Assembly: GCA_002269645.1 (NCBI GenBank)
Contig: NIVC01003946.1
Span: forward strand, 1-64,000
DNA length: 64,000 nucleotides
Direction of reading: 5' to 3'
DNA from: Macrostomum lignano
Taxonomy: Eukaryota
Part shown: positions 3,040 to 43,200 of the stretch, piece by piece
Position numbering within the stretch: the stretch's first letter is position 1
How the letters are laid out: the number at the start of each line of letters is the position of its first letter
Notes under the pieces: model-generated
The model's database searches: none
What the model was told of the DNA's origin: nothing
The model's input: only the letters and a program-made list of their open reading frames with translations
Made by a program: the position numbers and the translations under genes

Positions 3040-6000
3040 TTACCTTTGTGAGACAGCGGGTTGAAATAATGATAAAGTCACCCAGAGGGAATGCTCACCG
3101 GAGTCGCAGGCGGCCTCGAAGCTGCTCACCAGCCCGACACCGTCAGCCTCCGCCAGTCGCAGCGTCGCCACGCCGACTGCCGACTCCGCTGCCAGAAGGC
3201 CTGCCGCGCCATGCCGCAGCTCGAGTCTCCCGCAGCAGGACGTCGCGTGCGGCTGCGCCAGGCTGAAGGTCGCTCGCTGACGCTCCGCCTCGGCGTCGGC
3301 ACCGCCGCCGCTCGTCGGGCGAAACAGCGCCGCGGTGTCGTTGGCTCCGGTCGGCAGGATGCTCAGGAACCAGCCGGGAGCTGCCGCAGCTTCGAAGGAC
3401 GCCGCCGACCGCCGGCGGAAGGCGGCCGCGCCAGCCGGGCTCAGAGCCGGTCGCTGCAGCAGCCTCAGGGGCAGCCAGTCGGTTGCTAACGCGTTCGGCG
3501 TAGCCATGGCAACCGGACTGAGCTGCCGGTCGCGGCTGTGGACCAGTGCAGAAGTCGGCGGGTACCGCTGGATGTGTTCGGCTTGGCCTCCCAGAGCTCG
3601 AAGGCCTCGCCGCCGCCGCACAGAGTGGGAGCTGGGAGTGGAACGGGATTTTGAATTGCGGTTACCAGCTGTGCTAGAATAAAGGTTTCACATTGAGAGA
3701 AGTCAAGTTAGCTGATATTCATACTCATAATTGTATTTTAAAGGCGTCAAGTAGCTGTCTGCGGTAAATCCGGCTGACTCTTGCGCTACGCGACCCCCAG
3801 ACTTATTTATTGCGCGCCCGCCTTCATTTGGGGCTTGTGTGCACGGATATTGGCCAGGTGGGGTGCGATTCACAGCCAAGAGGGCCAACAGCCGTTCTGT
3901 AGTTGTTATTATTATCGGACTTTAAGCGTCACTAAAAACTAATCCTCACCAACTGAAGCTGCGAACACCTGAATCTCGCAGATGGACAGCTGCGACGTCC
4001 CGTCAATGGTCATCCGAACCATCTGACCAGTCCGGTCCTTGAGATGCACTCGCTGTTGAACTTGGCCAACTTTGTTGCCTCTAAATGACACGTTTGCCAG
4101 AGCAGTGCCGTTGGACGATGCGTCTTGCACTCCGTAAAACTGCAAACTGGTTTCAGCATTGGACGCTGCCTGAACAGCCAGAATGACTGAGGCTTCGTGC
4201 AACTGCACCGGACGCAGAAAGTCCACGAGAAGCCACGCGGTGGAGTCATTGGATGTTGCGATCGGCGAGTTGAAGCAGTTGCTGAGTTTGGCATCGACTG
4301 ACAACTCAGTGCTGACTGCAGAACTGGCGGCGGTCGGCATGCCCTCCGACACGAGTGGAACTGCAAGTGGCGACAAGTGGCGATTGCTAAGCAAGCTCTA
4401 ATCTATGCGAAAAAATCCATACGCAAAGCACTCACAGACGTCCCAGCCGAAGACCTCGACCTCGCACAGGTTCATGATCAGCTGATTGGAAGCCAGACCC
4501 GTGACGTTCTTCTGCAGCACGATGAACCGTCCAACGAGCAGGATGTCCGAAAACGGTACTACCTGAGGACTCAGACTCGCCGGACCAGCGTAGTAATTCA
4601 CCTGTGCGAACTGGCTCGGCGACCAGGTGACCCACGACTGCGGATCCGATCCCACACCGAGAGTCACCTGTCGGAACCGAGTGTAGCAGCAGTCCTGACG
4701 GTTGTACACGTCCACTCGGTCGATGAGGAAGTCGCGCAGCAGGTCGATCATGAACCAGGGCGTCGGGTCGGAAGCGAAGGTCTCAGCGCACGAGCCGGAG
4801 CTCCATCTTCCATTGTGGTTTCCGTCCACCAGGGAGGACGCGTACAGCCCGGCGTAGTTGATGGTGGAGAAGCGGGCCGGCTGGCCGCGAGACCGCAGGG
4901 ACGAAGCGGCTGAAAAAGCAGAGCTTTCAGAAAGTTAAACAACAATGACAGCTCACAGCTCCACAGAGGAGGTCCTCAGCCGACTCACCAGTGCTGCAGT
5001 TCACGGTGAAGCTCAGCTCGGCCGCTGTCAGTCCCACAGCCGACCCGCCTGCCTCAGTGGAGTTCGGCGACAAAAGTCCGACGAAAATCCCCGGCCGCAG
5101 GACGCTCTCAAAGCTGACACCGCCGTCTGCTCCGGACAGTCGAGTCCGAAAGCTGGCCGCAGTCAGCTGTGCCGCCGATGTGAGCGGAGTCGCGTCGAGT
5201 CTCGAGCCGTTGCCGGCCGTCAGGAACAGAGTCGGAGCGCCGTCGGACAACAGGAGAGCCAGAGTGTCCGGCCGAGCTGGCAGGAGGTTCACCGCTTCGA
5301 ACATCGCCGATCGGACGCACGGAGCGGCACCGAGGGTCGCGGAAGCGACGAGGCTTTCGGTGGAGGCGTCGAGACAGAGTTGAGCAGCTGGAGTCAGCTG
5401 AGCAGCGAGACTGAGCTGCTCATTGGGACACAGCGGTAGACCTGCATTCCAAGTTGATGGGCTTTCAGTCAGAGTAAATTATTATGCTAATCTATTTGTG
5501 AAAATTTTACGATAGACTGGTGCTTGTAAAAGTGTGTGAATGGGCCTTTCGCTTGGCGTGCGATGCACCCCCATCTGCACAGAGTGAATTTATGATTTAT
5601 GGTGATAGGAAAGTCAGGGCTGTCGTATGCACTGCAGTTAGCTAGCTCAATTTCTACAAATGCAACCAAAATACAAAAATCTGGCGAACTTTTTTAGGCA
5701 CTGGCATACAAAAAAATTCGCCTGGAACCGAGCAAGGAAGATGGGGCCCGGTTCCTCCGCGGGGGGCTCGGCAGGGTCACAGGCACGTAGCAAAGCAGCA
5801 ACAACAATCGCAGCGATTTTCTTTGAATTAAAAACTAGAGGCCGATTGTCGTTTCGAGCAGAGCAGCCCCCCCCCCTATTCATTTGATGCAGCCAGCATG
5901 ACTAGCAATTTTTCTGATGGATTGCACGGTACACAGAGATGGCTGATCAATTCAATAGAAATATCTTCCCTTCTGGGAAACTACTCTAAATTCCAAGCGC

Positions 6001-9200: not shown

Positions 9201-10065
9201 TCTTATGTTAATAGCTGCAATTTTCATATAGACTAGTTCTGCTTGCATTGCACTTTTATTACTGTCGTGCCATATTTTCTAATCAGCCACTACCCGAGAC
9301 AGATATGCTCTCTATCCTTCCATCCATGGACTACTTAGCGGAGCATCTGGACTGGCCAAAAAACAAGAAAATTTGGCGAAAAAATGCTTCAAATATTTTC
9401 GTAACGAGTTTCTCCTCTCGTTATTAGAAAAATTCAAACTAAAAATCTCAGTCCAGATTTCCCATAGTAGTAGTCCATGATCCCAAGTGTCTTTGTAAGT
9501 AGCAACTGGACTAGAAGGCGATCGAAAACTCCCCTAAGTTCTCTAACTTTGTCTTACCCTAATCGGGCCTTCTGGTCCGTTGTACCCACAGTGCTGTGCT
9601 GCACTTGCTCGATCCAGCTCTAACCCCCCCCCGCTGCGAACCAGAGCCCTTCAACCTATCCGAGGCGGGGGGAGGGCATCTAGTCTTCACAGGCCAGTTT
9701 CCAACCAGCTTCATCTGCTCAGTTGCCGTCTGCCCTGCAAACTGGCTCAAGCAGTGCCTCGCCTGCAGCAAGCACACTATTGATTGATACCCTAAGCTTC
9801 TCGCTTCTTTGATTAACGTTAATTCTGCTCCTAAAAGAAGATCTTCAGACAAAGTGAGGCTTTTCTATACCTGTGTATTTTAAACATCCCAATCCTAAAT
9901 CCCAATTTAAAATCCCAATCTGAAATCCCAATCTGAAATCCCAATCTAAAATCCCAATCTGAAATCCCAATCTGAAATCTCCTTCATCCAGTCTCTCCTT
10001 CATCCTGAGCGCTCCAGAATCAGCCGCCGCATCATTCGGTGAAGGAGCCGCATGGGTTCGGCGCC

Positions 10066-10176
10066 ATGGGCAGGCGGATTCGGCGAATTGGCCGATACCT
10101 GCTGAGCGGCTGCACCCTGGGGCGCGGCGGCTTCGCTCGAGTGGAACTGGCGGTTCACGAGGTCACTCAGTGCGAG
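10066..10176 (+). CDS. HUNK: HUNK-like kinase exon A (subdomain I, Gly-rich loop)
   Basis: MGRRIRRIGRYLLSGCTLGRGGFARVELAVHEVTQCE, then a GTAACC donor (phase 0). Resembles HUNK RVGNYLIG..LGEGSFAKV. The exon may start at an acceptor at 10018. Not present in the ORF track. Confidence 0.85.
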
Positions 10177-10180
10177 GTAA

Positions 10181-11826
10181 CCTAGATCCAAGATCCTAGA
10201 TCCCAGATCCTAGATCCCAGATCCTAGATCCCAGATCCTAGATCCCAGATCCTAGATCCCAGATCCTAGATCCCAGATCCTAGATCCCAGATCCTAGATC
10301 CCAGATCCTAGATCCCAGATCCTAGATCCCAGATCCTAGATCCCAGATCCTAGATCCCAGATCCTAGATCCCAGATCCTAGATCCCAGATCCTAGATCCC
10401 AGATCCTAGATCCCAGATCCTAGATCCCAGATCCTAGATCCCAGATCCTAGATCCCAGATCCTAGATCCCAGATCCTAGATCCCAGATCCTAGATCCCAG
10501 ATCCTAGATCCCAGATCCTAGATCCCAGATCCTAGATCCCAGATCCTAGATCCCAGATCCTAGATCCCAGATCCTAGATCCCAGATCCTAGATCCCAGAT
10601 CCTAGATCCCAGATCCTAGATCCCAGATCCTAGATCCCAGATCCTAGATCCCAGATCCTAGATCCCAGATCCTAGATCCCAGATCCTAGATCCCAGATCC
10701 TAGATCCCAGATCCTAGATCCCAGATCCTAGATCCCAGATCCTAGATCCCAGATCCTAGATCCCAGATCCTAGATCCCAGATCCTAGATCCCAGATCCTA
10801 GATCCCAGATCCTAGATCCCAGATCCTAGATCCCAGATCCTAGATCCCAGATCCTAGATCCCAGATCCTAGATCCCAGATCCTAGATCCCAGATCCTAGA
10901 TCCCAGATCCTAGATCCCAGATCCTAGATCCCAGATCCTAGATCCCAGATCCTAGATCCCAGATCCTAGATCCCAGATCCTAGATCCCAGATCCTAGATC
11001 CCAGATCCTAGATCCCAGATCCTAGATCCCAGATCCTAGATCCCAGATCCTAGATCCCAGATCCTAGATCCCAGATCCTAGATCCCAGATCCTAGATCCC
11101 AGATCCTAGATCCCAGATCCTAGATCCCAGATCCTAGATCCCAGATCCTAGATCCCAGATCCTAGATCCCAGATCCTAGATCCCAGATCCTAGATCCCAG
11201 ATCCTAGATCCCAGATCCTAGATCCCAGATCCTAGATCCCAGATCCTAGATCCCAGATCCTAGATCCCAGATCCTAGATCCCAGATCCTAGATCCCAGAT
11301 CCTAGATCCCAGATCCTAGATCCCAGATCCTAGATCCCAGATCCTAGATCCCAGATCCTAGATCCCAGATCCTAGATCCCAGATCCTAGATCCCAGATCC
11401 TAGATCCCAGATCCTAGATCCCAGATCCTAGATCCCAGATCCTAGATCCCAGATCCTAGATCCCAGATCCTAGATCCCAGATCCTAGATCCCAGATCCTA
11501 GATCCCAGATCCTAGATCCCAGATCCTAGATCCCAGATCCTAGATCCCAGATCCTAGATCCCAGATCCTAGATCCCAGATCCTAGATCCCAGATCCTAGA
11601 TCCCAGATCCTAGATCCCAGATCCTAGATCCCAGATCCTAGATCCCAGATCCTAGATCCCAGATCCTAGATCCCAGATCCTAGATCCCAGATCCTAGATC
11701 CCAGATCCTAGATCCCAGATCCTAGATCCCAGATCCTAGATCCCAGATCCTAGATCCCAGATCCTAGATCCCAGATCCTAGATCCCAGATCCTAGATCCC
11801 AGATCCTAGATCCCAGATCCCAGATC
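10181..11826 (+). repeat. 14-bp satellite (AGATCCCAGATCCT)n, left arm of an inverted pair
   Basis: ~1.65 kb nearly perfect array; reverse complement of 14302-14778. Confidence 0.97.
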
Positions 11827-11836
11827 CCAATCCCAC

Positions 11837-11985
11837 CTGGAGTCAGATGCGCCATGTTCTCCTTGAACCGAGGCGGGTGAAGACCAGCGCTAATGATGCC
11901 CGCCAGACGTTTTCCTCGGTGCTGATCGAAGTAGGGCGAATCGAAAGGCAGCTGGCCGACAACCATGACGAACAGGACTACGCCT
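11837..11985 (-). CDS. HUNK: HUNK-like kinase exon E (subdomains IX-X), inverted
   Basis: (L)GVVLFVMVVGQLPFDSPYFDQHRGKRLAGIISAGLHPPRFKENMAHLTP; CTACAG acceptor phase 2, GTGGGA donor phase 1; 149 nt. Confidence 0.9.
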
Positions 11986-12057
11986 CTGTAGAAAATTAAG
12001 GAGGTTTGGCTTAAATAAAAAATAAGATGCTTCAACCAGAGAAGTCCCTCATCCACC

Positions 12058-12088
<31 letters not shown>

Positions 12089-12109
12089 GAACCGGTCTAG
12101 CCACCTCTC

Positions 12110-12640
12110 TGAGAGGGAGGAACCGGTGGGACACCATCAGCAACCGGTAGAGAGAGCGACAGAGAAACCGGTGGGACACCCTCAGCAACCGGTAGAGAGA
12201 GCGACAGAGAAACCGGTGGGACACCCTCAGCAACCGGTAGAGAGAGCGACAGAGAAACCGGTGGGACACCCTCAGCAACCGGTAGAGAGAGCGACAGAGA
12301 AACCGGTGGGACACCCTCAGCAACCGGTAGAGAGAGCGACAGAGAAACCGGTGGGACACCCTCAGCAACCGGTAGAGAGAGCGACAGAGAAACCGGTGGG
12401 ACACCCTCAGCAACCGGTAGAGAGAGCGACAGAGAAACCAGTGGGACACCCTCAGCAACCGGTAGAGAGAGCGACAGAGAAACCGGTGGGACACCCTCAG
12501 CAACCGGTAGAGAGAGCGACAGAGAAACCGGTGGGACACCCTCAGCAACCGGTAGAGAGAGCGACAGGGAAACCGGTGGGACACCCTTAGCAACCGGTAG
12601 AGAGAGCGACAGAGAAACCGGTGGGACAACCTCAGCAACA
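12110..12640. repeat. 45-bp intronic minisatellite
   Basis: Unit AAACCGGTGGGACACCCTCAGCAACCGGTAGAGAGAGCGACAGAG; lies between kinase exons D and E. Confidence 0.95.
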
Positions 12641-12667
12641 GGTAGAGCAACAGGCAACCCAGACTTA

Positions 12668-12811
<144 letters not shown>

Positions 12812-12893
12812 TTATTGGATTAAATTTCAAGGTGCTTTAAGTCTCAACCTCTTCTATTCTTAGAAATTCCTTCCCCAATGCAAGAGAACTCAC

Positions 12894-13122
12894 CGCAAAG
12901 TTTAACTGAAATCTTCTCTCTGTCCAGCAAAATGTTTTCAGTTTTCAAGTCCCTGTGCACCAGGCGGAGGCTGTGCAGATAGCCCAGTGCCGAGCTCAGC
13001 TGATAAAAGTACATCCTAGCTAACGACTCTGGGAAGCGCCGAGTTGGGAGGAAAGTCTTCAAGTGATCTTTGATTGTGCCGCCAGCTGCCAGCTCGGTGA
13101 CGAGTATGTACAGGCCATCGCC
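12894..13122 (-). CDS. HUNK: HUNK-like kinase exon C (subdomains V-VII, catalytic loop), inverted
   Basis: GDGLYILVTELAAGG...ALGYLHSLRLVHRDLKTENILLDREKISVKLC; CCTCAG acceptor phase 0, GTGAGT donor phase 1. Confidence 0.92.
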
Positions 13123-13361
13123 CTGAGGAAATTGACGGTTCATTGTTTGTCAGTCAGTCAGTATTGTTTGTCAGTCAGTCAGTCAGAATTGTTTGTCAGT
13201 CAGTCAGTATTGTTTGTCAGTCAGTCAGTCAGTGTTGTTTGTCAGTCAGTCAGTCAGTATTGTTTGTCAGTCAGTCAGTCAGAATTGTTTGTCAGTCAGT
13301 CAGTATTGTTTGTCAGTCAGTCAGTATTGTTTGTCAGTAGAGAAATGGACTGCAGGATTAC

Positions 13362-13490
13362 CTTCAGTGACTGATAGTACCGCACAATGTTGGGGTGCCG
13401 GATGTGGCTCAGCAGGCGGGCCTCTCTCAGCAGCGTCTGTCTGGCAAGCCGGTTTGGCAGCTTCCGGGTGTCCAAAACCTTCACTGCAAC
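13362..13490 (-). CDS. HUNK: HUNK-like kinase exon B (subdomains II-IV), inverted
   Basis: VAVKVLDTRKLPNRLARQTLLREARLLSHIRHPNIVRYYQSLK; CGCCAG acceptor and GTAATC donor, both phase 0; 129 nt. Confidence 0.9.
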
Positions 13491-13554
13491 CTGGCGACGA
13501 AAGAATCAGAGTTATAAAATTGTGTAAACAATTCGCTATGAAAATAGGGTGGGT

Positions 13555-13882
13555 TGCTAATCTAGCCAGCATCACTGATGAAGGAATAGAATGGATTGCT
13601 AATCTAGCCAACATCACTGATGAAGGAATAGAATGGATTGCCAATCTAGCCAGCATCACTGATGAAGGGATAGAATGGATTGCTAATCTAGCCAACATCA
13701 CTGATGCAGGAATAGAATGGATTGCTAATCTAGCCAACATCACTGATGAAGGAATAGAATGGATTGCTAATCTAGCCAGCATCACTGATGAAGGAATAGA
13801 ATGGATTGCTAATCTAGCCAGCATCACAGATGAAGGAATAGAATGGATTGCTAATCTAGCCAACATCACTGATGAAGGAATA
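13555..13882 (+). repeat. 42-bp minisatellite; same family at ~15045-15100 (remnant) and 23022-23306
   Basis: Unit GATGAAGGAATAGAATGGATTGCTAATCTAGCCAGCATCACT. Confidence 0.93.
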
Positions 13883-14301
13883 CGACTAGAACGTACTGTA
13901 AACTTTTCAGTTGAGTTTTCATAGGGAACAGCAAAAGTACATCAGCCCACTCGTCGCGAGCAGTCCAGAGACGGCTCTCTTTTTGTCGGCTCTCTCAGAA
14001 GAACAGAATATTTCCCAACAGAAATGTTACAGAGACAAGAAGATTAGTAACATCCGGTGTCGAACACGATCCCATCTGATTTCCCCAGGGTCACAGGGGG
14101 TTGCTCAGAATAGAGGAGTTGACTGCTGCTAATGGACTGCCCGATCGCGGGCAATTTTTAAAACTGCGTTTATTCCCTAAAACCAATCCGATGCCTCCAC
14201 AGGGTAAATGTTCGGCAAATAAATATCAAAAGCGGCCAGGAAAAGCAAATATTTGCTTAAATCCCAGGTCCAACTAGAGAGCCGGAGTCTCATATTATTT
14301 A

Positions 14302-14778
14302 ATCTAGGATCCGGGATCTGGGATCTAGGATCTGGGATCTAGGATCTGGGATCTAGGATCTGGGATCTAGGATCTGGGATCTAGGATCTGGGATCTAGGA
14401 TCTGGGATCTAGGATCTGGGATCTAGGATCTGGGATCTAGGATCTGGGATCTAGGATCTGGGATCTAGGATCTGGGATCTAGGATCTGGGATCTAGGATC
14501 TGGGATCTAGGATCTGGGATCTAGGATCTGGGATCTAGGATCTGGGATCTAGGATCTGGGATCTAGGATCTGGGATCTAGGATCTGGGATCTAGGATCTG
14601 GGATCTAGGATCTGGGATCTAGGATCTGGGATCTAGGATCTGGGATCTAGGATCTGGGATCTAGGATCTGGGATCTAGGATCTGGGATCTAGGATCTGGG
14701 ATCTAGGATCTGGGATCTAGGATCTGGGATCTAGGATCTGGGATCTAGGATCTGGGATCTAGGATCTGGGATCTAGGA
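14302..14778 (-). repeat. 14-bp satellite (AGGATCTGGGATCT)n, right arm of the inverted pair
   Basis: ~0.47 kb; exact reverse complement of the unit at 10181-11826. Confidence 0.97.
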
Positions 14779-14813
14779 TTAAAGACAAAATATAACCCCC
14801 TGGTATCGCCAAG

Positions 14814-17800
14814 GATGCCGTCAGTTACTGCACGGCCTCCTCGAGACAGATCCGGTCAAGCGGCTTCGAGTGTCCGCAGTCGGACAACTGTGCGGAAATT
14901 CAAATCGATGGCCGATGCTTCAAAGTCGGACGGCCAAAGATGAACAATCAGCTTCGAGGTTGGAAGCTACATCGTTCGTGGTAGGTTGGTGTTTGGTTTG
15001 CCCTGTGTACATAATTATTCTTGCTAATTGGTGCATTGGATTGCTAATCTATTCGCAACCAACATCACGGATAAAGGAATAGAATGGATTGCTATTCTAC
15101 CGATCACGAGTTAACAACAACCGATATATTTGTAGTTTCTAATAGGTAAACAGGTTCAGTTCTGATACGAAAAATGTCTTACCTTACAGGAATATTCAAG
15201 GCTAAACCGGAAAACTGACTTAACATCTCAGGTAATCAGCATTCTTAACAAATATTCATTTTCTCTTTCTTGAACATTTTTTGTAAGTAGAAGTAAAGTG
15301 TGACCTGTGAGTTACTGTAGAATGTGACCAGTGAGTGACTGTAGAATGTGACCTGTGAGTTACTGTAGAATGTGACCAGTGAGTGACTGTAGAATATGAC
15401 CTGTGAGTGACTGTAGAATGTGACCTGTGAGTGACTGTAGAATGTGACCTGTAAGTGACTGTAGAATGTGACCTGTGAGTTACTGTAGAATGTGACCAGT
15501 GAGTGACTGTAGAATGTGACCTGTGAGTGACTGTAGAATGTGACCTGTGAGTGACTGTAGAATGTGACCTGTGAGTGACTGTAGAATGTGACCTGTGAGT
15601 GACTGTAGAATGTGACCTGTGAGTGACTGTAGAATGTGACTTTGACCAGTGAGTGACTGTAGAATGTGACTTGTGAGTGACTGTAGAATGTGACCAGTGA
15701 GTGACTGTAGAATGTGACCTGTGAGTGACTGTAGAATGTGACCTGTGAGTGACTGTAGAATGTGACCTGTGAGTGACTGTAGAATGTGACCTGTGAGTGA
15801 CTGTAGAATGTGACCTGTGAGTGACTGTAGAATGTGACCTGTGAGTGACTGTAGAATGTGACCTGTGAGTGACTGTAGAATGTGACTTTGACCAGTGAGT
15901 GACTGTAGAATGTGACTTGTGAGTGACTGTAGAGTGTGACCTGTGAGTGACTGTAGAATGTGACCTGTTAGTGACTGTAGAATGTGACCTGTGAGTGACT
16001 GTAGAATGTGACCTGTGAGTGACTGTAGAATGTGACCTGTTAGTGACTGTAGAATGTGACCTGTGAGTGACTGTAGAATGTGACCTGTGAGTGACTGTAG
16101 AATGCGACCTGTGAGTGACTGTAGAATGTGACCTGTTAGTGACTGTAGAATGTGACATGTTAGTGACTGTAGAATGTGACCTGTGAGTTACTGTAGAATG
16201 TGACCTGTGAGTGACTGTAGAATGTGACCTTTGAGTGACTGTAGAATGTGACCTGTGAGTGACTGTAGAATGTGACCTGTTAGTGACTGTAGAATGTGAC
16301 CTGTGAGTGACTGTAGAATGTGACCTGTTAGTGACTGTAGAATGTGACCTGTTAGTGACTGTAGAATGTGACCAGTGAGTGACTGTAGAATGTGACCTGT
16401 GAGTGACTGTAGAATGTGACCTGTGAGTGACTGTAGAATGTGACCTGTGAGTGACTGTAGAATGTGACCTGTAATATATATAATATTAACGCATCGGAGT
16501 GGCGGGGCGTACGGGCGCGAAATGGGGTGGTGGGCACACAAGATGTACAGTCAATAATTCAATAGTCATTTAGTTAGTCATTCAGTCACAAGTGCAGCGG
16601 CAGACTCCAGCGCTGCCTCATCTCCCCCTTCGAAATGGGTCGGGGGCACGCCTGGGGTTGACCGAACCGGGTAGCGAGGTGCTGCTGTTTGAATTGGGCT
16701 TTGTTCGGATCCAACGAACGGGTCCTGACCGAGTTCTCCGGGCGGATCCTGACCGAGTTCGCCGGGCGGGTCCTGACTGAGTCCTCCGGGCGGGTCCTGA
16801 CTGAGTCCTCCGGGCGGGTCCTGACCGAGTCCTCCGGGCGGGTCCTGACCGAGTTCTCCGGGCGGGTCCTGACTGAGTCCTCCGGGCGGGTCCTGACCGA
16901 GTCCTCCGGGCGGGTCCTGACCGAGTCCGCCGGGCGGGTCCTGACCGAGTCCGCCGGGCGGGTCCTGACCGAGTCCGCCGGGCGGGTCCTGACCGAGTTC
17001 GATTGGTAGATTCTGACCGAATTGTTCTGGCTGGTCCTGGTCTGCTACAACGCGGCTCAGCTGATCCGCATGCGCCGCATCCGCATCCGCATGCGTCTTG
17101 ACGAGCGATAAGGGCAGTGTTGGTGCTCCTGACGCTGCTGATCTCCAGGCGTGTACCACAGGCTCGCTCTGATTGGTGTGCGCATGGTTATCGGGTTGCG
17201 TAGTTGTCGACCCATGAGCTGCGACGGGCTCTGCTGGCGCCCAGCATGCGGCACACACCTGTAGTTTAGCAGTACCCTGGATAGGAAGGACTCGTAGCTT
17301 TCGGACTGGTCCCACGCCGCAGATGATTTCTTGATAGACTGGACCATCCGCTCGGCCAAGCCGTTAGACTGAGGGTGCCGCAAGGGAGTCTTGATGGAGC
17401 GGCAGCCGATTCTTTCCAGCCAGGCGACCAGATTGGCGTCGTGGAACTCGGCGGCGTTGTCACTAACAAGCACTTGAGGCACGCCGTTTCTAGCAAAGAT
17501 CTCCTGCAACACCCGCTTGACTGTCGCCGCGTCCCTATTTTGCAGCCTCAGGCCAGCCGGACATAGCGTCCAGGAGTCCGACCCTCGGCACGCATGCATG
17601 ATCCATGTGGACTCTGTACCACGGCTTTTCCTCGTCGGGCCAACTGTGGACACTCTCCAGACCACTCGGACGCAGTCTTGAGCAGGTCGGACAACCTCGA
17701 ACGTAGGCCTCGACGTCGTTGCAATAGCCGGGCCACCGGGCTGAATTCTGTAGGCGAGCGCGCGTTGAGCCAGATCCTTGATGCGTGTCGTGCATGATTC

Positions 17801-20800
17801 CAAGAACGCTTTGTCGCAGGACAGCCGGGATGACTGGGCGATCACCGTAGCAGAGAACTCTGTTGTCCGTCGTGAGGGCGTGTCGGATGGCCTTGAAAGG
17901 TCATCCGACTGTAGAACGTGACCTGTTAGTGACTGTAGAATGTGACTTTGACCTGTGAGTGACTGTAGAATGTGACCAGTGAGTGACTGTAGAATGTGAC
18001 CAGTGAGTGACTGTAGAATGTGACCAGTGAGTGACTGTAGAATGTGACCTGTTAGTGACTGTAGAATGTGACCTGTGAGTGACTGTAGAATTTGACCTGT
18101 TAGTGACTGTAGAATGTGACCTGTTAGGGACTGTAGAATGTGACCTGTGAGTGACTGTAGAATGTGACCTGTGAGTGACTGTAGAATGTGACCTGTGAGT
18201 GACTGTAGAATGTGACCTGTGAGTGACTGTAGAATGTGACCTGTGAGTGACTGTAGAATGTGACTTTGACCAGTGAGTGACTGTAGAATGTGACTTGTGA
18301 GTGACTGTAGAGTGTGACCTGTGAGTGACTGTAGAATGTGACCTGTTAGTGACTGTAGAATGTGACCTGTTAGTGACTGTAGAATGTGACCTGTGAGTGA
18401 CTGTAGAATGTGACCTGTGAGTGACTGTAGAATGTGACCTGTTAGTGACTGTAGAATGTGACCTGTGAGTGACTGTAGAATTTGACCTGTTAGTGACTGT
18501 AGAATGTGACCTGTTAGGGACTGTAGAATGTGACCTTTGAGTGACTGTAGAATGTGACCTGTGAGTGACTGTAGAATGCGACCTGTGAGTGACTGTAGAA
18601 TGTGACCTGTGAGTGACTGTAGAATGTGACCTGTTAGTGACTGTAGAATGTGACCTGTGAGTGACTGTAGAATTTGACCTGTTAGTGACTGTAGAATGTG
18701 ACCTGTTAGGGACTGTAGAATGTGACCTGTGAGTGACTGTAGAATGTGACCTGTGAGTGACTGTAGAATGCGACCTGTGAGTGACTGTAGAATGTGACCT
18801 GTGAGTGACTGTAGAATGTGACCTGTGAGTGACTGTAGAATGTGACTTTGACCAGTGAGTGACTGTAGAATGTGACTTGTGAGTGACTGTAGAGTGTGAC
18901 CTGTGAGTGACTGTAGAATGTGACCTGTTAGTGACTGTAGAATGTGACCTGTTAGTGACTGTAGAATGTGACCTGTGAGTGACTGTAGAATGTGACCTGT
19001 TAGTGACTGTAGAATGTGACCTGTTAGTGACTGTAGAATGTGACCTGTGAGTGACTGTAGAATGCGACCTGTGAGTGACTGTAGAATGTGACCTGTTAGT
19101 GACTGTAGAATGTGACATGTTAGTGACTGTAGAATGTGACCTGTGAGTTACTGTAGAATGTGACCTGTGAGTGACTGTAGAATGTGACCTTTGAGTGACT
19201 GTAGAATGTGACCTGTGAGTGACTGTAGAATGTGACCTGTGAGTGACTGTAGAATGTGACCTGTGAGTGACTGTAGAATGTGACCTGTAATATATATAAT
19301 ATTAACGCATCGGAGTGGCGGGGCGTACGGGCGCGAAATGGGGTGGTGGGCACACAAGATGTACAGTCAATAATTCAATAGTCATTTAGTTAGTCATTCA
19401 GTCACAAGTGCAGCGGCAGACTCCAGCGCTGCCTCATCTCCCCCCTTCGAAATGGGTCGGGGGCACGCCTGGGGTTGACCGAACCGGGTAGCGAGGTGCT
19501 GCTGTTTGAATTGGGCTTTGTTCGGATCCAACGAACGGGTCCTGACCGAGTTCTCCGGGCGGATCCTGACCGAGTTCGCCGGGCGGGTCCTGACTGAGTC
19601 CCCCGGGCGGGTCCTGACTGAGTCCTCCGGGCGGGTCCTGACCAAGTCCTCCGGGCGGGTCCTGACCGAGTTCTCCGGGCGGGTCCTGACTGAGTCCTCC
19701 GGGCGGGTCCTGACCGAGTCCTCCGGGCGGGTCCTGACCGAGTCCGCCGGGCGGGTCCTGACCGAGTCCGCCGGGCGGGTCCTGACCGAGTCCGCCGGGC
19801 GGGTCCTGACCGAGTTCGATTGGTAGATTCTGACCGAATTGTTCTGGCTGGTCCTGGTCTGCTACAACGCGGCTCAGCTGATCCGCATGCGCCGCATCCG
19901 CATCCGCATGCGTCTTGACGAGCGATAAGGGCAGTGTTGGTGCTCCTGACGCTGCTGATCTCCAGGCGTGTACCACAGGCTCGCTCTGATTGGTGTGCGC
20001 ATGGTTATCGGGTTGCGTAGTTGTCGACCCATGAGCTGCGACGGGCTCTGCTGGCGCCCAGCATGCGGCACACACCTGTAGTTTAGCAGTACCCTGGATA
20101 GGAAGGACTCGTAGCTTTCGGACTGGTCCCACGCCGCAGATGATTTCTTGATAGACTGGACCATCCGCTCGGCCAAGCCGTTAGACTGAGGGTGCCGCAA
20201 GGGAGTCTTGATGGAGCGGCAGCCGATTCTTTCCAGCCAGGCGACCAGATTGGCGTCGTGGAACTCGGCGGCGTTGTCACTAACAAGCACTTGAGGCACG
20301 CCGTTTCTAGCAAAGATCTCCTGCAACACCCGCTTGACTGTCGCCGCGTCCCTATTTTGCAGCCTCAGGCCAGCCGGACATAGCGTCCAGGAGTCCGACC
20401 CTCGGCACGCATGCATGATCCATGTGGACTCTGTACCACGGCTTTTCCTCGTCGGGCCAACTGTGGACACTCTCCAGACCACTCGGACGCAGTCTTGAGC
20501 AGGTCGGACAACCTCGAACGTAGGCCTCGACGTCGTTGCAATAGCCGGGCCACCGGGCTGAATTCTGTAGGCGAGCGCGCGTTGAGCCAGATCCTTGATG
20601 CGTGTCGTGCATGATTCCAAGAACGCTTTGTCGCAGGACAGCCGGGATGACTGGGCGATCACCGTAGCAGAGAACTCCGTTGTCCGTCGTGAGGGCGTGT
20701 CGGATGGCCTTGAAAGGTCATCCGACTGTAGAACGTGACCTGTTAGTGACTGTAGAATGTGACTTTGACCTGTGAGTGACTGTAGAATGTGACCAGTGAG

Positions 20801-23800
20801 TGACTGTAGAATGTGACCAGTGAGTGACTGTAGAATGTGACTTTGACCTGTGAGTGACTGTAGAATGTGACCAGTGAGTGACTGTAGAATGTGACCAGTG
20901 AGTGACTGTAGAATGTGACCAGTGAGTGACTGTAGAATGTGACTTTGACCTGTGAGTGACTGTAGAATGTGACCAGTGAGTGACTGTAGAATGTGACCAG
21001 TGAGTGACTGTAGAATGTGACCAGTGAGTGACTGTAGAATGTGACTTTGACCTGTGAGTGACTGTAGAATGTGACCAGTGAGTGACTGTAGAATGTGACC
21101 AGTGAGTGACTGTAGAATGTGACTTTGATCTGTGAGTGACTGTAGAATGTGACCAGTGAGTGACTGTAGAATGTGACCTGTTTATGGCAGTCACCTGTCC
21201 CCCGTTGCTATGCAGGCCATCGCGCAATTGTCGAGTTTGCTCCAACTACCAGTCGAACTTATTTGCCAATATTTTTCGGCAAAGCATGAAGCCGAAGAGG
21301 CTGGGTTCTCTGAGATTCGAGCAATGGTCACCATGCTGGAGGATCGCATATGGCAGCAACCTTCCGGTGCTTCTCGGGCACAGCAAACTGGTAGGGATTT
21401 GTGAATGTGTCTGTGAATGTGTCTGTGAATGCGTCTGTGAATGTGTCTGTGAATGTGTCTGTGAATGTGTCTGTGAATGTGTCTGTGAATGTGTCTGTGA
21501 ATGTGTCTGTGAATGTGTCTGTGAATGTGTCTGTGAATGTGTCTGTGAATGTGTCTGTGAATGCGTCTGTGAATGTGTCTGTGAATGTGTCCGTGAATGT
21601 GTTTGTAAATGTGTCTGTGAATGTGTCTGTGACTGTGTCTGTGAATGTGTCTGTGAATGTGTCTGTGATGCATCTGTGAATGTGTCTGTGACTGTGTTTG
21701 TAAATATTTCTGTGAATGTGTCTGTGAATGTGTCTGTGAATGTGTCTGTGATGCATCTGTGAATATGTCTTTGAATGTGTCTGTGAATGTGTCTGTGAAT
21801 GTGTTTGTAAATATTTCTGTGAATATTTCTGTGAATGTGTCTGTGAATGTGTCTGTGAATGCGTCTGTGAATGTGTCTGTGAATGTGTCTGTGAATGCGT
21901 CTGTGAATGTGTCTGTGAATGTGTCTGTGAATGCGTCTGTAATGTGTCTGTGAATGTGTCTGTGAATGTGTCTGTGAATGCGTCTGTGAATGTGTCTGTG
22001 AATGTGTCTGTGAATGCGTCTGTGAATGTGTCTGTGAATGTGTCTGTGAATGTGTCTGTGAATGTGTCTGTGAATGCGTCTGTGAATGCGTCTGTGAATG
22101 TGTCTGTGAATGCGTCTGTGAATGTGTCTGTGAATGTGTCCGTGAATGTGTTTGTAAATGTGTCTGTGAATGTGTCTGTGAATGTGTCTGTGAATGTGTC
22201 TGTGAATGTGTCTGTGAATGTGTCTGTGAATGCGTCTGTGAATGCGTCTGTGAATGTGTCTGTGAATGCGTCTGTGAATGTGTCTGTGAATGTGTCCGTG
22301 AATGTGTTTGTAAATGTGTCTGTGAATGTGTCTGTGACTGTGTCTGTGAATGTGTCTGTGAATGTGTCTGTGATGCATCTGTGAATGTGTCTGTGACTGT
22401 GTTTGTAAATATTTCTGTGAATGTGTCTGTGAATGTGTCTGTGAATGTGTCTGTGATGCATCTGTGAATATGTCTTTGAATGTGTCTGTGAATGTGTCTG
22501 TGAATGTGTTTGTAAATATTTCTGTGAATATTTCTGTGAATGTGTCTGTGAATGTGTCTGTGAATGCGTCTGTGAATGTGTCTGTGAATGTGTCTGTGAA
22601 TGCGTCTGTGAATGTGTCTGTGAATGTGTCTGTGAATGCGTCTGTGAATGTGTCTGTGAATGTGTCTGTGAATGTGTCTGTGAATGTGTCTGTGAATGCG
22701 TCTGTGAATGCGTCTGTGAATGTGTCTGTGAATGCGTCTGTGAATGTGTCTGTGAATGTGTCCGTGAATGTGTTTGTAAATGTGTCTGTGAATGTGTCTG
22801 TGAATGTGTCCGTGATGCATCTGTGAATATGTCTTTGAATGTGTCTGTGAATGTGTCTGTGAATGCATTTGTAAATATTTCTGTGAATGTGTCTGTGAAT
22901 GTGTCTGTGAATTTTTCTGTTATTGACAATCAATCATTATTGTGATAAATGTTTGCACTCAAAAACATTTTCACAGTAAAAGTTTGAAACCCGAGTGATA
23001 AAGAGACCTCCAACACATCACGGATGAAGGAATAGAATGGATTGCTAATCTAGCCAACATCACTGATGAAGGAATAGAATGGATTGCTAATCCAGCCAGC
23101 ATCTCTGATGAAGGAATAGAATGGATTGCTAATCTAGCCAGCATCACTGATGAAGGAATAGAATGGATTGCTAATCTAGCCAGCATCACTGATGAAGGAA
23201 TAGAATGGATTGCTAATCTAGCCAGCATCACTGATGAAGGAATAGAATGGATTGCTAATCTAGCCAGCATCACTGATGAAGGAATAGAATGGATTGCTAA
23301 TCCAGCCAATTACCCGTATTTCAGGTGTTATGCACACACCTCTGCCTAACAAGCAGAAGACTCAGACAACTGAGCTCCAACATCATGAGCAGGAGCAGCA
23401 GAATCATCAGAGTCCAACCAAAGCTCCAAATAAAACTTCCGGCCGTCGTTTCTTGCACCGTCTGCTAGGCCTCCGAGATCGTCTGAGGCGTCGTAAAAAG
23501 TCGTCGAAGATATTCTCGCCCAGTGAACATCCGGGACCTGGCACTGACGGCGGCTGCAGACAACAAACAGCAGCGGTCGCTGAGCTTCGCAGTCAGCTGC
23601 TGGCTGCTGTGGACCAGGAGGCTGCCGGTGAGTAGCTTAATGGCTAGCGCGCCTGTTCTGCAATCGGTAGGGCGGTGGTTCGAATCTTGATCCTACCAAG
23701 TCTTTTTTTAACGATTTTTACCACTAACAAATCAGCTTACTTAAAGTAGCTTACTTTGTATTTACTTCAATGGTTATATACATGTATTAATTTAAATTTA

Positions 23801-24298
23801 AATTCTCTAATTTTTTTTCTTACTTACTGAGCATAATGAAGTAGTATAAAGGGGGTTTTGAATAAATATGAATTGAAAAATTGAATTTCAGCAAATCATC
23901 AACACAAGCCAATCGACAGACCAACAAACTTGCCACTAGACGAGATCGAATCTGTAAGCCGCAGTTTTATAATTTTCAATCTGTGTTTTCGATACATATC
24001 GGTAGTTGTCAACTTTGCTATATATTTTCTAACAGCCGTCCCTCGTCGCCGACCTCCGGCTTCGGGCAAGTCGGCAGCTGCTGCGCGATCAGCTGATGGA
24101 CTCGGCGGAGAGGCTCGTGGCGTCATGTCGGTGCAGCCAGGAGGCGCCGAGGGCGGAGGCGGAGCTGCTGGAAAGTCCGGCGGGACCGGCGCCAGGTGGT
24201 CTCCTAGCAACCACGGCTCAGGTGCACCAGGGCTCAGTGACTGCAGCCACTGCGTCTGGCAGGCCTGCGAGGCCCAACGGCCTTCTGATCCGCGTTGA
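14814..24298 (+). CDS. HUNK: HUNK-like kinase 3' exons F-I (14814-14980, 21216-21390, 23325-23627, 24036-24298)
   Basis: Exon F (G)CRQLLHGLLETDPVKRLRVSAV is subdomain XI. Exon G AIAQLSSLLQLPVELICQYF... is a possible UBA-like region. H and I form a low-complexity tail ending in TGA at 24298. Phases 1/0, 0/1, 1/1 and 1/stop are all compatible through GT-AG sites. Confidence 0.8.
16470..17905 (-). mobile_element. 5'-truncated Ty3/Gypsy LTR retrotransposon: integrase + PPT + 151-bp 3' LTR (copy 1)
   Basis: HHCC region LRQSVLGIMHDTHQG...WPG...CPTC; core RVHMDH, GVPQVLVSDNAAEF, HPQSNGLAERMVQSIK; frameshift near 17545. It has an internal 24-bp GQDPPGGL repeat, PPT AAGGGGGAGA at 16621-16630, and an LTR TGAGGC...TTACA at 16620-16470. 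Confidence 0.88.
19286..20722 (-). mobile_element. Ty3/Gypsy integrase + PPT + 3' LTR fragment (copy 2, near-identical)
   Basis: Same sequence offset by 2816-2817 nt. LTR at 19436-19286. It has one extra C in the PPT and a few substitutions (~19601, ~19644, ~20678). Confidence 0.88.
21400..22915. repeat. 12-bp minisatellite (TGTCTGTGAATG)n with internal higher-order duplication
   Basis: Direct reading; source of the HRHI / TFTD / SQTH pseudo-ORFs. Confidence 0.95.
23627..23709 (+). ncRNA. tRNA-like Pol III unit (pseudo-tRNA or SINE head)
   Basis: A box TAGCTTAATGG 23633-23643, B box GGTTCGAATC 23677-23686, T7 terminator 23703-23709. Stems pair poorly, so a functional tRNA is not supported. 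Confidence 0.45.
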
Positions 24299-40200: not shown

Positions 40201-43200
40201 CTTGAGAGAACTATACCAGAATTTTTAACAGAATCTTCACAAACTATAAACAGCATCTTCACAAACTATAAACAGAATCTTCACAAACTATAAACAGAAT
40301 CTTCACAAACTATAAACAGAATCTTCACAAGCTATACCAGAATCTTCACAGACTGAAGCTGCACCGTCAGACTCATCAAGACTGCGCCATCGCCATTTCA
40401 GGCAAGCATCGCAGAACCGCCTCCGGCCATCAGCAGCAGCTGCTGCTGAGTTCGGGCAACTCAGCCTGCCAGCTCGAGGACTCGGGCATCGCCGGCTCGC
40501 CAATCGATCTCACTGGCAGTCGGAAACGCTCAGCAACCGCAGCCTCTCTGCTGCATCATCTACATCCGGCATTCCAGTCTCCCTATCAGAGGCCGCAGCA
40601 TCATCAGCTGCAGTGCGCCGAGGACCCGGAGCAGGTGGCCATCCTGACTGGAACCAGCGACGATCCTCTGGACCAGTTCATGTACATCAACGACCAGCAG
40701 AATGTGAAATGGCGCCGGCTGTACGAAAGGCACAGCAGGACGAATCCTCCGAACAGATGCGGCGAGTGTCTGAAGGACCTGAGCTGCAAGAGCGCCCTGA
40801 TCATGCACTACAGGACCCACACGGGTGAGGGCTCTTGATGATGAAGCATTAACTTGGAGTCTGGATTTTTACTAGCACACCCAAACGTTTACGAATACCC
40901 TGAACTCTGCTCGAGAAAACTTTGGAACCTTCTCTACTTCTCTACCTTCTTTACTTCTCTCTGATAGCTTTTCTACACCATCCTGAACCCTTCTCTACAG
41001 CACCCTGAACCCTTCTCTACAGCACCCTGAACCCTTCTCTACAACACCCTGAACCCTTCTCTACAACACCCTGAACCCTTCTCTACAACACCCTGAACCC
41101 TTCTCTACAGCACCCTGAACCCTTCTCTACAACACCCTGAACCCTTCTCTACAGCACCCTGAACCCTTCTCTACAGCACCCTGAACCCTTCTCTACAGCA
41201 CCCTGAACCCTTCTCTACAGCACCCTGAACCCTTCTCTACAGCATCCTAAACCCTTCTCTACTGCACCCTGAACCCTTCTCTACAACACCCTGAACCCTT
41301 CTCTACAACACCCTGAACCCTTCTCTACAGCACCCTGAACCCTTCTCTACAACACCCTGAACCTTTCTCTACAACACCCTGAACCCTTCTCTACAGCACC
41401 CTGAACCCTTCTCTACAGCACCCTGAACCTTTCTCTACAACACCCTGAACCCTTCTCTACAACACCCTGAACCCTTCTCTACAACACCCTGAACCCTTCT
41501 CTACAACACCCTGAACCCTTCTCTACAACACCCTGGAACTTTGCTCTACAAAATGCATCAAACTCCGACATCCCCCCCCCGCGCACAGAGAGCAGTCAGC
41601 CGCAGAGAGCAAAGTCAAATAGAATTTGGATTATTTTTGGCCAAGGAAAAACAGTTCTGAGAATGAGAAGTGGGACGGGGGTCGAGGGCCTCTCCTGCTC
41701 ATAACTGAGTCTGTTTGACGAGTTAAGCCACTACAGGACGCGCTGGCTTGGAGCTGTGATGGAAAATCATGTAATCACATTTGATTTCAAGGGCCCGACC
41801 AGTTTTAATAAATAAAAATGAGACACACAGAGCCAGCCGGAGACAGCGCCTCTAAGTCCCTTCTTAACCCCCTCTTCCCGCGGTCACCCCTGCAACTCGC
41901 ATCCACAGAAATCCCCCCTTGCCCAAAGATTTTGAGCCTCGGGGTCTGTAATGCAATTTGGCATGCTGGCTCGGCGGAAAGACCGCGGGGAGAGATGAGG
42001 GCGGCAGATAGATGAGGATAGATAGATGGATTTGAGATGCGCAAACTGCCGGGTCCAAAAACCCTTCAAAATCCGCTGAATTCTGATCGGGTTAACAGGG
42101 GGGGGGGGCGACGCTCGTCATCAGCTCGCGGCAGGCTGGGAGAGGCACAAACAAACACAGAATTTCTGCCTTCGGGGAAAAATGACAATATATCTGATTA
42201 GAAAGTTATCCCTTGGACTGGCCGATGAATTTGTTATAATAAAACTATTTTGATGTGACAAAAATATCATTCTTTAAGTTTGGTATAATCCCTAACCCTC
42301 GGTTTCTTGACTGTCAGCAGCCTCCCAGATCCTCAGTTGCTGGGCCTCCAGCCTCCCAGATCTTCAGTTGCTGGGCCTCCAGCCTCCCAGATCTTCAGTT
42401 GCTGGGCCTCCAGCCTCCCAGATCTTCAGTTGCTGGGCCTCCAGCCTCCCAGATCTTCAGTTGCTGGGCCTCCAGCCTCCCAGATCTTCAGTTGCTGGCC
42501 TCCAGCCTCCCAGATCTTCAGTTGCTGGGCCTCCAGCCTCCCAGATCCTCAGTTGCTGGGCCAGCCTCCCAGATCCTCAGTTGCTGGGCCAGCCTCCCAG
42601 ATCCTCAGTTGCTGGGCCCTCAGCCTCCCAGATCTTCAGTTGCTGGGCCTCCAGCCTCCCAGATCCTCAGTTGCTGGGCCAGCCTCCCAGATCCTCAGTT
42701 GCTGGGCCAGCCTCCCAGATCCTCAGTTGCTGGGCCTCCAGCCTCCCAGATCTTCAGTTGCTGGGCCTCCAGCCTCCCAGATCCTCAGTTGCTGGGCCAG
42801 CCTCCCAGATCCTCAGTTGCTGGGCCTCCAGCCTCCCAGATCCTCAGTTGCTGGGCCAGCCTCCCAGATCCTCAGTTGCTGGGCCAGCCTCCCAGATCCT
42901 CAGTTGCTGGGCCAGCCTCCCAGATCCTCAGTTGCTGGGTTAGCCTCCCAGATCCTCAGTTGCTGGGCCAGTCTCCCAGATCCTCAGTTGCTGGGCCAGC
43001 CTCCCAGATCATTAGTTGCTGGGCCAGCCTCCCGGATCCTCAACCTAAAGTGTGACCTGTCCCTATACACCTGATATCAGTTACTGAGTGATAAAATTGC
43101 CGGAATCAAGGCAGCATCAATCAATGACCATCAATTCCCCAGTTGAGCGGCGATGCAGAGCTCATAAAAAACATTGAAAAACCGCTCTGCAAGATTAATG

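Follow-up and report, generated by a model that had tools for sequence, protein, structure and literature searches.

The window analysed here, a stretch of 64,000 nucleotides from the flatworm Macrostomum lignano (GenBank assembly GCA_002269645.1, contig NIVC01003946.1, positions 1 to 64,000 of the forward strand), contains a protein kinase gene whose exons do not all face the same way. Exon A and exons F to I lie on the plus strand; only exons B to E, which hold the greater part of the catalytic core, are flipped onto the minus strand. The flipped segment is bounded by two minisatellite arrays built from the same unit and placed in opposite orientation. This arrangement probably results from an inversion in one of several copies of the gene, and that reading is weighed below against its rivals.

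Exons and reading frame of the kinase gene

The region 9800-15400 was read directly and exons A to F were rebuilt by script. Exon A (10066-10176, plus strand) carries the ATG and kinase subdomain I (GRGGFARV); its product, MGRR...GRGGFARVELAVHEVTQCE, ends at the GT donor at 10177, and a tblastn match covers 10096-10179. An out-of-frame upstream ATG 14 nt before the kinase start opens a short overlapping upstream open reading frame (10052-10066), and an AG at about 10016-10017 is a possible acceptor for a spliced leader or an upstream exon. The four following exons are read from the minus strand: exon B (13490-13362), with VAVK, alpha-C and HPNIV; exon C (13122-12894), with subdomains IV to VIb (HRDLKTEN); exon D (12804-12669), which runs from DFG through APE to DAWSL; and exon E (11985-11837), with subdomains IX and X (GVVLFVMVVGQLPFD...HLTPG). 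Exon F (14814-14980), back on the plus strand and preceded by AG, encodes subdomain XI (DPVKRL) and GNSNRW and is matched by all four M. lignano protein models considered in this work. Two further plus-strand exons are probable. Exon G (15190-15231, 42 nt) encodes EYSRLNRKTDLTSQ, a 10/10 match to the model A0A1I8FLH7; exon H (21216-21390) encodes a post-kinase UBA-like segment matched by A0A1I8FLH7 and A0A1I8F9V2, and resembles the region behind the kinase domain of a leafhopper homologue. Exon I (23325-23635, plus strand) has an uncertain acceptor and an uncertain 3' end, and the models, apparently built on the earlier ML2 assembly, extend to 24035-24290 and further.

When the block of exons B to E is turned back, the acceptors of exons A to F are all AG and the donors all GT, with junction phases 0, 0, 1, 2 and 1 from A-B to E-F and 0 at F-G. 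The reconstructed A-B junction joins ...CAGTGCGAG to GTTGCAGTG..., and the E-F junction joins ...GACTCCAG to GATGCCGTC.... Together, the six exons give 921 nt in frame and free of stops, hence a product of 307 amino acids that contains GRGGFARV, VAVK, HRDLKTEN, DFG, APE and DPVKR and in which the Pfam Pkinase domain is found in one stretch over residues 17-273 (E=3.7e-61). Only after re-inversion is the catalytic domain complete (G-loop, VAxK, HRDLKxxN, DFG, APE and the arginine of subdomain XI). Among solved structures it comes closest to SIK3, MARK and AMPK, and its best named matches are HUNK and HUNK-homologue B-like proteins, at 37-43% identity, from which the reconstructed protein can be assigned to the CAMKL group as a HUNK-like kinase. 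As the DNA is written, in contrast, splicing of A to F is out of frame and reaches a stop in exon G when the sequence is read by hand, while splicing of A to G stays in frame and leaves out the kinase domain. An earlier note on the window, made from its letters alone, had proposed the same coordinates and strands for exons A to F, the intact HUNK-like domain after re-inversion and the outcome of the two as-written splices, all of which are borne out. It had also listed phase-matched junctions of 0,0,1,2,1,0,1,1; this series stands at every junction but G-H, which has phase 0 rather than 1 with G at 15190-15231 and H at 21216-21390, H-I having phase 1.

A separate minus-strand kinase gene was considered as the owner of exons B to E and rejected. 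A tblastn search of the whole window with the reconstructed product and four homologues found no second set of kinase exons, including any other subdomain I or XI exon on the opposite strand; with one set only, a second gene is excluded as the owner of exons B to E. In other animals, orthologues start with MG..IGRY, and the sequence of exon A runs straight into VA[IV]K. Since these proteins are contiguous from A to B, the collinear order is the ancestral one. A search for orthologues and transcripts of the rebuilt kinase retrieved no close one, the best match being 41% identical (49% over partial coverage); the database apparently holds no Macrostomum transcriptome or genomic open reading frames, so that the lack of a collinear transcript weighs little.

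Minisatellite arrays bounding the block

Tandem Repeats Finder places array 1 at 10181-11833, with 118 copies of (CCTAGATCCCAGAT) and the C-rich strand on the plus strand, and array 2 at 14302-14779, with 34 copies of the reverse complement of CCTAGATCCCAGAT and the G-rich strand on the plus strand. The repeat unit of both is 14 bp long and the two arrays face in opposite directions. The earlier note had likewise described a block bounded by inverted satellite arrays, with ends at 11826 and 14778 that are now set at 11833 and 14779. Array 1 fills everything from position +4 of the exon A donor to the exon E donor, and the latter (GTGGG) passes straight into degenerate units of the array. As assembled, the arrays measure 1.65 kb and 0.48 kb, and no Ns occur in the region read. 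The inverted block amounts to 2.5 kb and comprises exons B to E together with the 3' portion of what was originally intron 1 (13491-14301, minus strand), which travels with them and includes a 42-bp satellite at 13543-13882. In terms of the gene, intron 1 has one array at its 5' end, and intron 5 is taken up by the second.

Over 478 nt, the two arms show 99% complementarity whichever register of array 1 is taken, and a position-by-position comparison with the unit revealed no internal variant in either array. Other arrays of the window mostly show an internal match of only 80-97%. The CCTAGATCCCAGAT motif was not found in the window outside the two arrays, 0 matches being expected by chance. 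Identity this close to perfect implies either very recent common ancestry of the arms or ongoing exchange between them, and it points to inter-arm recombination, a mechanism that would be expected to flip the block.

Deviating units occur at three of the four array ends only (those at exon A and at exon E, and the inner one of array 2), as they do at natural ends. This feature bears on an alternative origin that we rank second, in which the inversion cut one array in two, the second breakpoint falling in the tiny intron 5, so that the arrays would be the product of the rearrangement and not its cause. Such a split would account economically for two identical arrays in inverted orientation. Against it stands the donor of exon E, which enters three degenerate units, as would be seen at the natural end of an array. 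A short inverted motif, TTAATC...GATTAA, flanks array 2 (14295-14310 and 14775-14790); in the re-inverted orientation ATTAAA follows both arrays (for array 1, compare 10177-10195), which may be chance or a trace of their origin.

Traces of a duplication or of a mobile element were also looked for, and this idea was rejected. Array 1 fills the gap from exon A to exon E, and the ends of an element would find no place there. A search for additional homology between the block and its surroundings, such as a duplication or a mobile element would leave, found only the 42-bp satellite in common. This satellite is present in three introns of the kinase gene, at 13543-13882 inside the block and at 15037-15099 and 23016-23308 outside it, in the same orientation as assembled, and its two long copies are 95-97% identical. 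Its orientation was set aside as too weak a piece of evidence on the inversion.

Inverted repeats around a segment are also the architecture of a programmed or somatic invertible switch operated by a site-specific recombinase; a somatic switch was among the options of the earlier note. Nothing further at the locus speaks for one. The repeats are long homogeneous arrays of 0.5-1.6 kb, not short specific sites, and the window encodes neither a serine nor a tyrosine invertase. A search for recombinases in the window returned only two copies of a degenerate retroelement integrase (rve) fragment, below the Pfam threshold, which is not an invertase. The earlier statement that the window has no recombinase gene is thus correct for invertases and has to be amended for these two fragments in intron G-H. 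With no site-specific recombinase and no specific recombination sites, the on/off or somatic switch finds no support, and its probability is in our view practically negligible. The fragments themselves belong to a tandem duplication with a period of 2817 bp that occupies 15299-21178 of intron G-H, each unit of which contains two 24-bp arrays and one degenerate integrase open reading frame; the two frames (17057-17845 and 19874-20662) encode identical products of 262 amino acids, with a Pfam rve match at E=3.9e-5 that lies below the gathering score.

Gene models and the case for an inversion

A search with exons A, F, G, H and I, from which B to E had been left out, retrieved four UniProt proteins of M. 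lignano, which were then mapped on the window; the comparison was made at the level of the protein models. All four (A0A1I8F9V2, A0A1I8F6Y8, A0A1I8FLH7 and A0A1I8JQI5) are chimeric or frameshifted. Their errors include the fusion of antisense exon C to exon F, the reading of F in wrong frames and the translation of satellite arrays (APAPEAPAPE..., 27.0-27.4 kb), and the names given to them in UniProt (guanylate cyclase domain, MKLP1_Arf_bdg domain) disagree with the features of the window to which they map.

The models fall into two sequence types, type 1 with A0A1I8F9V2 and A0A1I8F6Y8 and type 2 with A0A1I8JQI5 and A0A1I8FLH7. Type 2 models read WPILQS and QQTVAVAEL where the window has WPMLQS and QQTAAVAEL; A0A1I8JQI5 has in addition DPVNRL for DPVKRL of the window, at a place where A0A1I8FLH7 is frameshifted and unreadable. 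Because these differences are substitutions and not indel noise, type 2 represents a different gene copy. M. lignano is a neopolyploid whose three subgenomes are genetically isolated; its paralogues diverge by 2.2% genome-wide and by 1.1% in coding sequence (CDS) and show very many structural differences, inversions included (PMC10733133). The few substitutions between the window type and the A0A1I8JQI5 type fit the divergence of subgenome copies. A query of two polybromo bromodomain exons from the far end of the window gave almost exclusively M. lignano proteins. For the polybromo gene of the window, exons are about 97-99% identical to UniProt M. lignano models in non-frameshifted stretches, which fits M. 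lignano itself or conceivably its sibling M. janickei; the overall identity of 79% is low through the frameshifted ML2 models and was rejected as a sign of a different Macrostomum species.

The type 2 model A0A1I8JQI5 begins with MVVGQLPFDSPYFDQHRGKRLAGIISA, identical at 27/27 positions to exon E (minus strand of the window, 11966-11886), and passes directly from this sense exon E to exons F, H and I, all of them plus-strand exons in the window, whose own arrangement does not permit such a join. Since a gene model reads a single strand, exon E must lie upstream of F in the same orientation in the contig behind A0A1I8JQI5. To judge from this model, a collinear arrangement exists in a diverged M. 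lignano copy, as far as the passage from E to F is concerned.

The type 1 model A0A1I8F9V2 belongs to the window type: its frame-1 reading of exon F, with SGQAASS and MADASKS, requires the AAG (K) and ATG (M) codons of the window, and its last exon is 86/86 identical. The 39 amino acids at its N-terminus do not match the sequence in front of exon F but correspond to the plus strand at 12952-13062, the antisense of exon C, and are followed by exons F, H and I in order. This N-terminal match is a mosaic of three frames (PVH, RRRL, PSAELS, LIKVHPS, LTTL and EESLQ), the pieces of which are ordered and spaced correctly to within 1 nt (tblastn and an ordered k-mer chain). A frameshift-tolerant alignment of the start of the model scores 111, against a best score of 40 on the other strand and of 43.2 +/- 3.4 (maximum 55) in 100 shuffles. 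The remaining exons of these error-ridden models match the window in the same mosaic manner. Antisense C before sense F in a model read from one strand implies that the contig behind it carries the same inversion, and this contig is in all likelihood from another assembly, because its indel pattern differs from that of the window. The window-type copy would accordingly be inverted in two independent representations, the window and A0A1I8F9V2. The two other models, A0A1I8F6Y8 and A0A1I8FLH7, start at exon F.

We consider it likely that the locus harbours a real and young inversion in one redundant copy of the kinase gene, probably produced by recombination between the inverted arrays. The kinase of the window would be one of several diverged copies, probably homeologues. 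After these had diverged, the 2.5-kb segment of exons B to E and part of intron 1 would have been inverted in the germline, presumably through homologous recombination between the two opposite 14-bp arrays. The inverted copy would then yield no kinase by ordinary cis-splicing and would be structurally inactivated and probably without function, a loss tolerated by virtue of another copy that retains the forward arrangement. Exons and splice sites free of decay suggest that the event was recent. A reversed segment, highly identical inverted repeats and a non-inverted form elsewhere (E to F), which are among the features of inversion by non-allelic homologous recombination, are all present. Of the options raised in the earlier note, the inversion allele is the one to gain support, from antisense C before F in A0A1I8F9V2 and from sense E to F in A0A1I8JQI5.

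Several observations weigh against this interpretation. Undecayed exons fit a recent event but would equally fit a functional gene. A0A1I8JQI5 attests collinearity for E to F only, A0A1I8F9V2 is an error-ridden model of ab initio appearance, and the protein database search returned not one M. lignano model in which exon A, B or C is read in sense. The crossover point is invisible inside homogeneous arrays, where breakpoints cannot be placed. Finally, if the window belongs to the Mlig_3_7 assembly, ambiguous reads across perfect arrays could have misled both that assembly and ML2, which have their PacBio reads in common.

This last point leads to the possibility of an assembler flip, in which the true locus would be collinear, with the C-strand array in intron 1 and the G-strand array in intron 5, and reads would have been misjoined through perfect arrays that may be longer and collapsed. 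Homogeneous arrays give no anchors, and models that start at exon F, as A0A1I8F6Y8 and A0A1I8FLH7 do, are compatible with contigs or models broken at the array. About 15% of the genome of M. lignano is made up of simple and tandem repeats, which make it notoriously difficult to assemble, and ML2 and Mlig_3_7 were built from the same PacBio reads (PMC5730564). On the other side, antisense C and sense F stand on one strand in a model of the same copy that comes from another contig or assembly, and the ML2 annotation also has a collinear E to F for another copy, so that both arrangements could be represented. The arrays, at 0.48 and 1.65 kb as assembled and with no Ns, are short relative to PacBio read lengths. 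The earlier note had regarded this artefact as a serious candidate; A0A1I8F9V2 weakens it, the possible sharing of PacBio reads between the two assemblies keeps some of its force, and on the whole it seems rather improbable.

Perfect inverted arms of at least 0.48 kb might also allow the block to re-invert repeatedly by homologous recombination, so that an unprogrammed pair of on and off alleles of this copy would coexist in populations or cultures. Inverted-repeat pairs do cause recurrent inversions, as at FLNA-EMD in human Xq28 and in the inverted-repeat isomers of plastids. The perfect identity of the arrays, which suggests ongoing exchange, and the fully intact exons favour such a flip-flop. 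The window-type copy, however, is seen only inverted, in the window and in A0A1I8F9V2, and the sole collinear model comes from a diverged copy; we regard recurrent flipping as unlikely.

Intact exons and splice sites throughout would also be expected of a mixed-strand gene expressed by trans-splicing, in which three pre-mRNAs (A, B to E from the minus strand, and F onward) would be linked in two trans-splicing steps, comparable to the rescue of eri-6/7 after its inversion. M. lignano adds a spliced leader to about 39% of its genes (PMC5730564), and the eri-6/7 locus demonstrates that an inverted part of a gene can be rescued (PMC11414722). Here, however, two independent events would be required. 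We know of no precedent for this. The minus-strand block offers no evidence of a promoter, and a collinear copy is able to supply the function. The repeats at this locus are inverted, while rescue of the eri-6/7 type depends on direct ones. As reasoned from the sequence, the C-strand array would be present both in the pre-mRNA of A and upstream of B, and the G-strand array both downstream of E and upstream of F, so that no productive pairing would result. Instead, the arrays would pair within a single plus-strand pre-mRNA, bringing A beside F and favouring the A to F splice. A trans-spliced mixed-strand gene is therefore exceedingly doubtful. The more general proposition that the inverted copy is still in use, its B to E block being transcribed separately and joined by two genic trans-splicing steps or, in a milder variant, its cassette toggling on and off within populations, we hold to be very doubtful.

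Significance, neighbouring features and known systems

Most probably the locus represents an ordinary inversion associated with repeats, by which one redundant kinase copy was knocked out in a repeat-rich neopolyploid. It would provide a small and clean case of a neopolyploid shedding redundant copies by structural change and not by point mutation, in which intronic minisatellite arrays act as, or mark, the recombination substrate. It also carries a warning for the annotation of M. lignano, the published models of which include a chimera of antisense and sense exons. Moreover, in a flatworm that practises spliced-leader trans-splicing, the locus is a cheap test case for the rescue of inverted exons by genic trans-splicing.

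A second inverted satellite pair is present in the window at 42318-43042 and 52978-53648, with a unit of 28-30 bp, about 83% identity and a distance of 10 kb. The array at 52978-53648 lies in an intron of polybromo, whose exons remain collinear on the minus strand; inverted satellite pairs are thus not rare here and not always tied to an inversion. At 46900-47800 (plus strand), a C2H2 zinc-finger gene has its end fingers in one frame and an acidic, Pro- and Gln-rich middle that is open only in another; the two changes of frame correspond to short introns or to residual indel errors of the assembly. The upstream neighbour of the kinase gene (3939-4829, minus strand) encodes a discoidin/F5_F8 type C-like domain (Pfam 8e-12, in the open reading frame at 4398-4829) and consists of two adjacent open reading frames in the same frame, separated by one stop.

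Inversions between inverted repeats by non-allelic homologous recombination are well known from human FLNA-EMD in Xq28 and from intron 22 of F8. The M. lignano locus resembles them in the flip between highly identical inverted repeats, in breakpoints hidden within these repeats and in the disruption of a gene that spans a repeat. It differs in that the repeats are minisatellites with a 14-bp unit in two introns of one gene rather than low-copy repeats of kilobase scale, that an internal block of exons is flipped, and that the arrangement used for comparison comes from a homeologous copy and not from an allele.

Exons of one protein lie on both strands in Drosophila mod(mdg4) as well, where common 5' exons are joined to alternative 3' exons, which have promoters of their own, in one trans-splicing step. 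Here, in contrast, the flip affects the catalytic core, midway along the gene. At the eri-6/7 locus of Caenorhabditis elegans, part of a formerly contiguous gene has been inverted via repeats, both forms exist and, as in M. lignano, the organism possesses a trans-splicing machinery. However, its helper repeats are direct in the DNA and give complementary pre-mRNAs, and rescue by trans-splicing has been demonstrated (PMC11414722). There the inverted part is terminal and a single trans-splicing event is enough, whereas the M. lignano locus has an internal block and inverted repeats and is known from DNA and protein models. A parallel in the species itself is the loss of gene copies after whole-genome duplication: redundant subgenome copies differ structurally, inversions included, and the CDS divergence of about 1% matches the few substitutions between the window-type and A0A1I8JQI5-type kinase copies. 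That work provides genome-wide statistics and cytogenetic inversions rather than this locus or the inversion of an exon block (PMC10733133).

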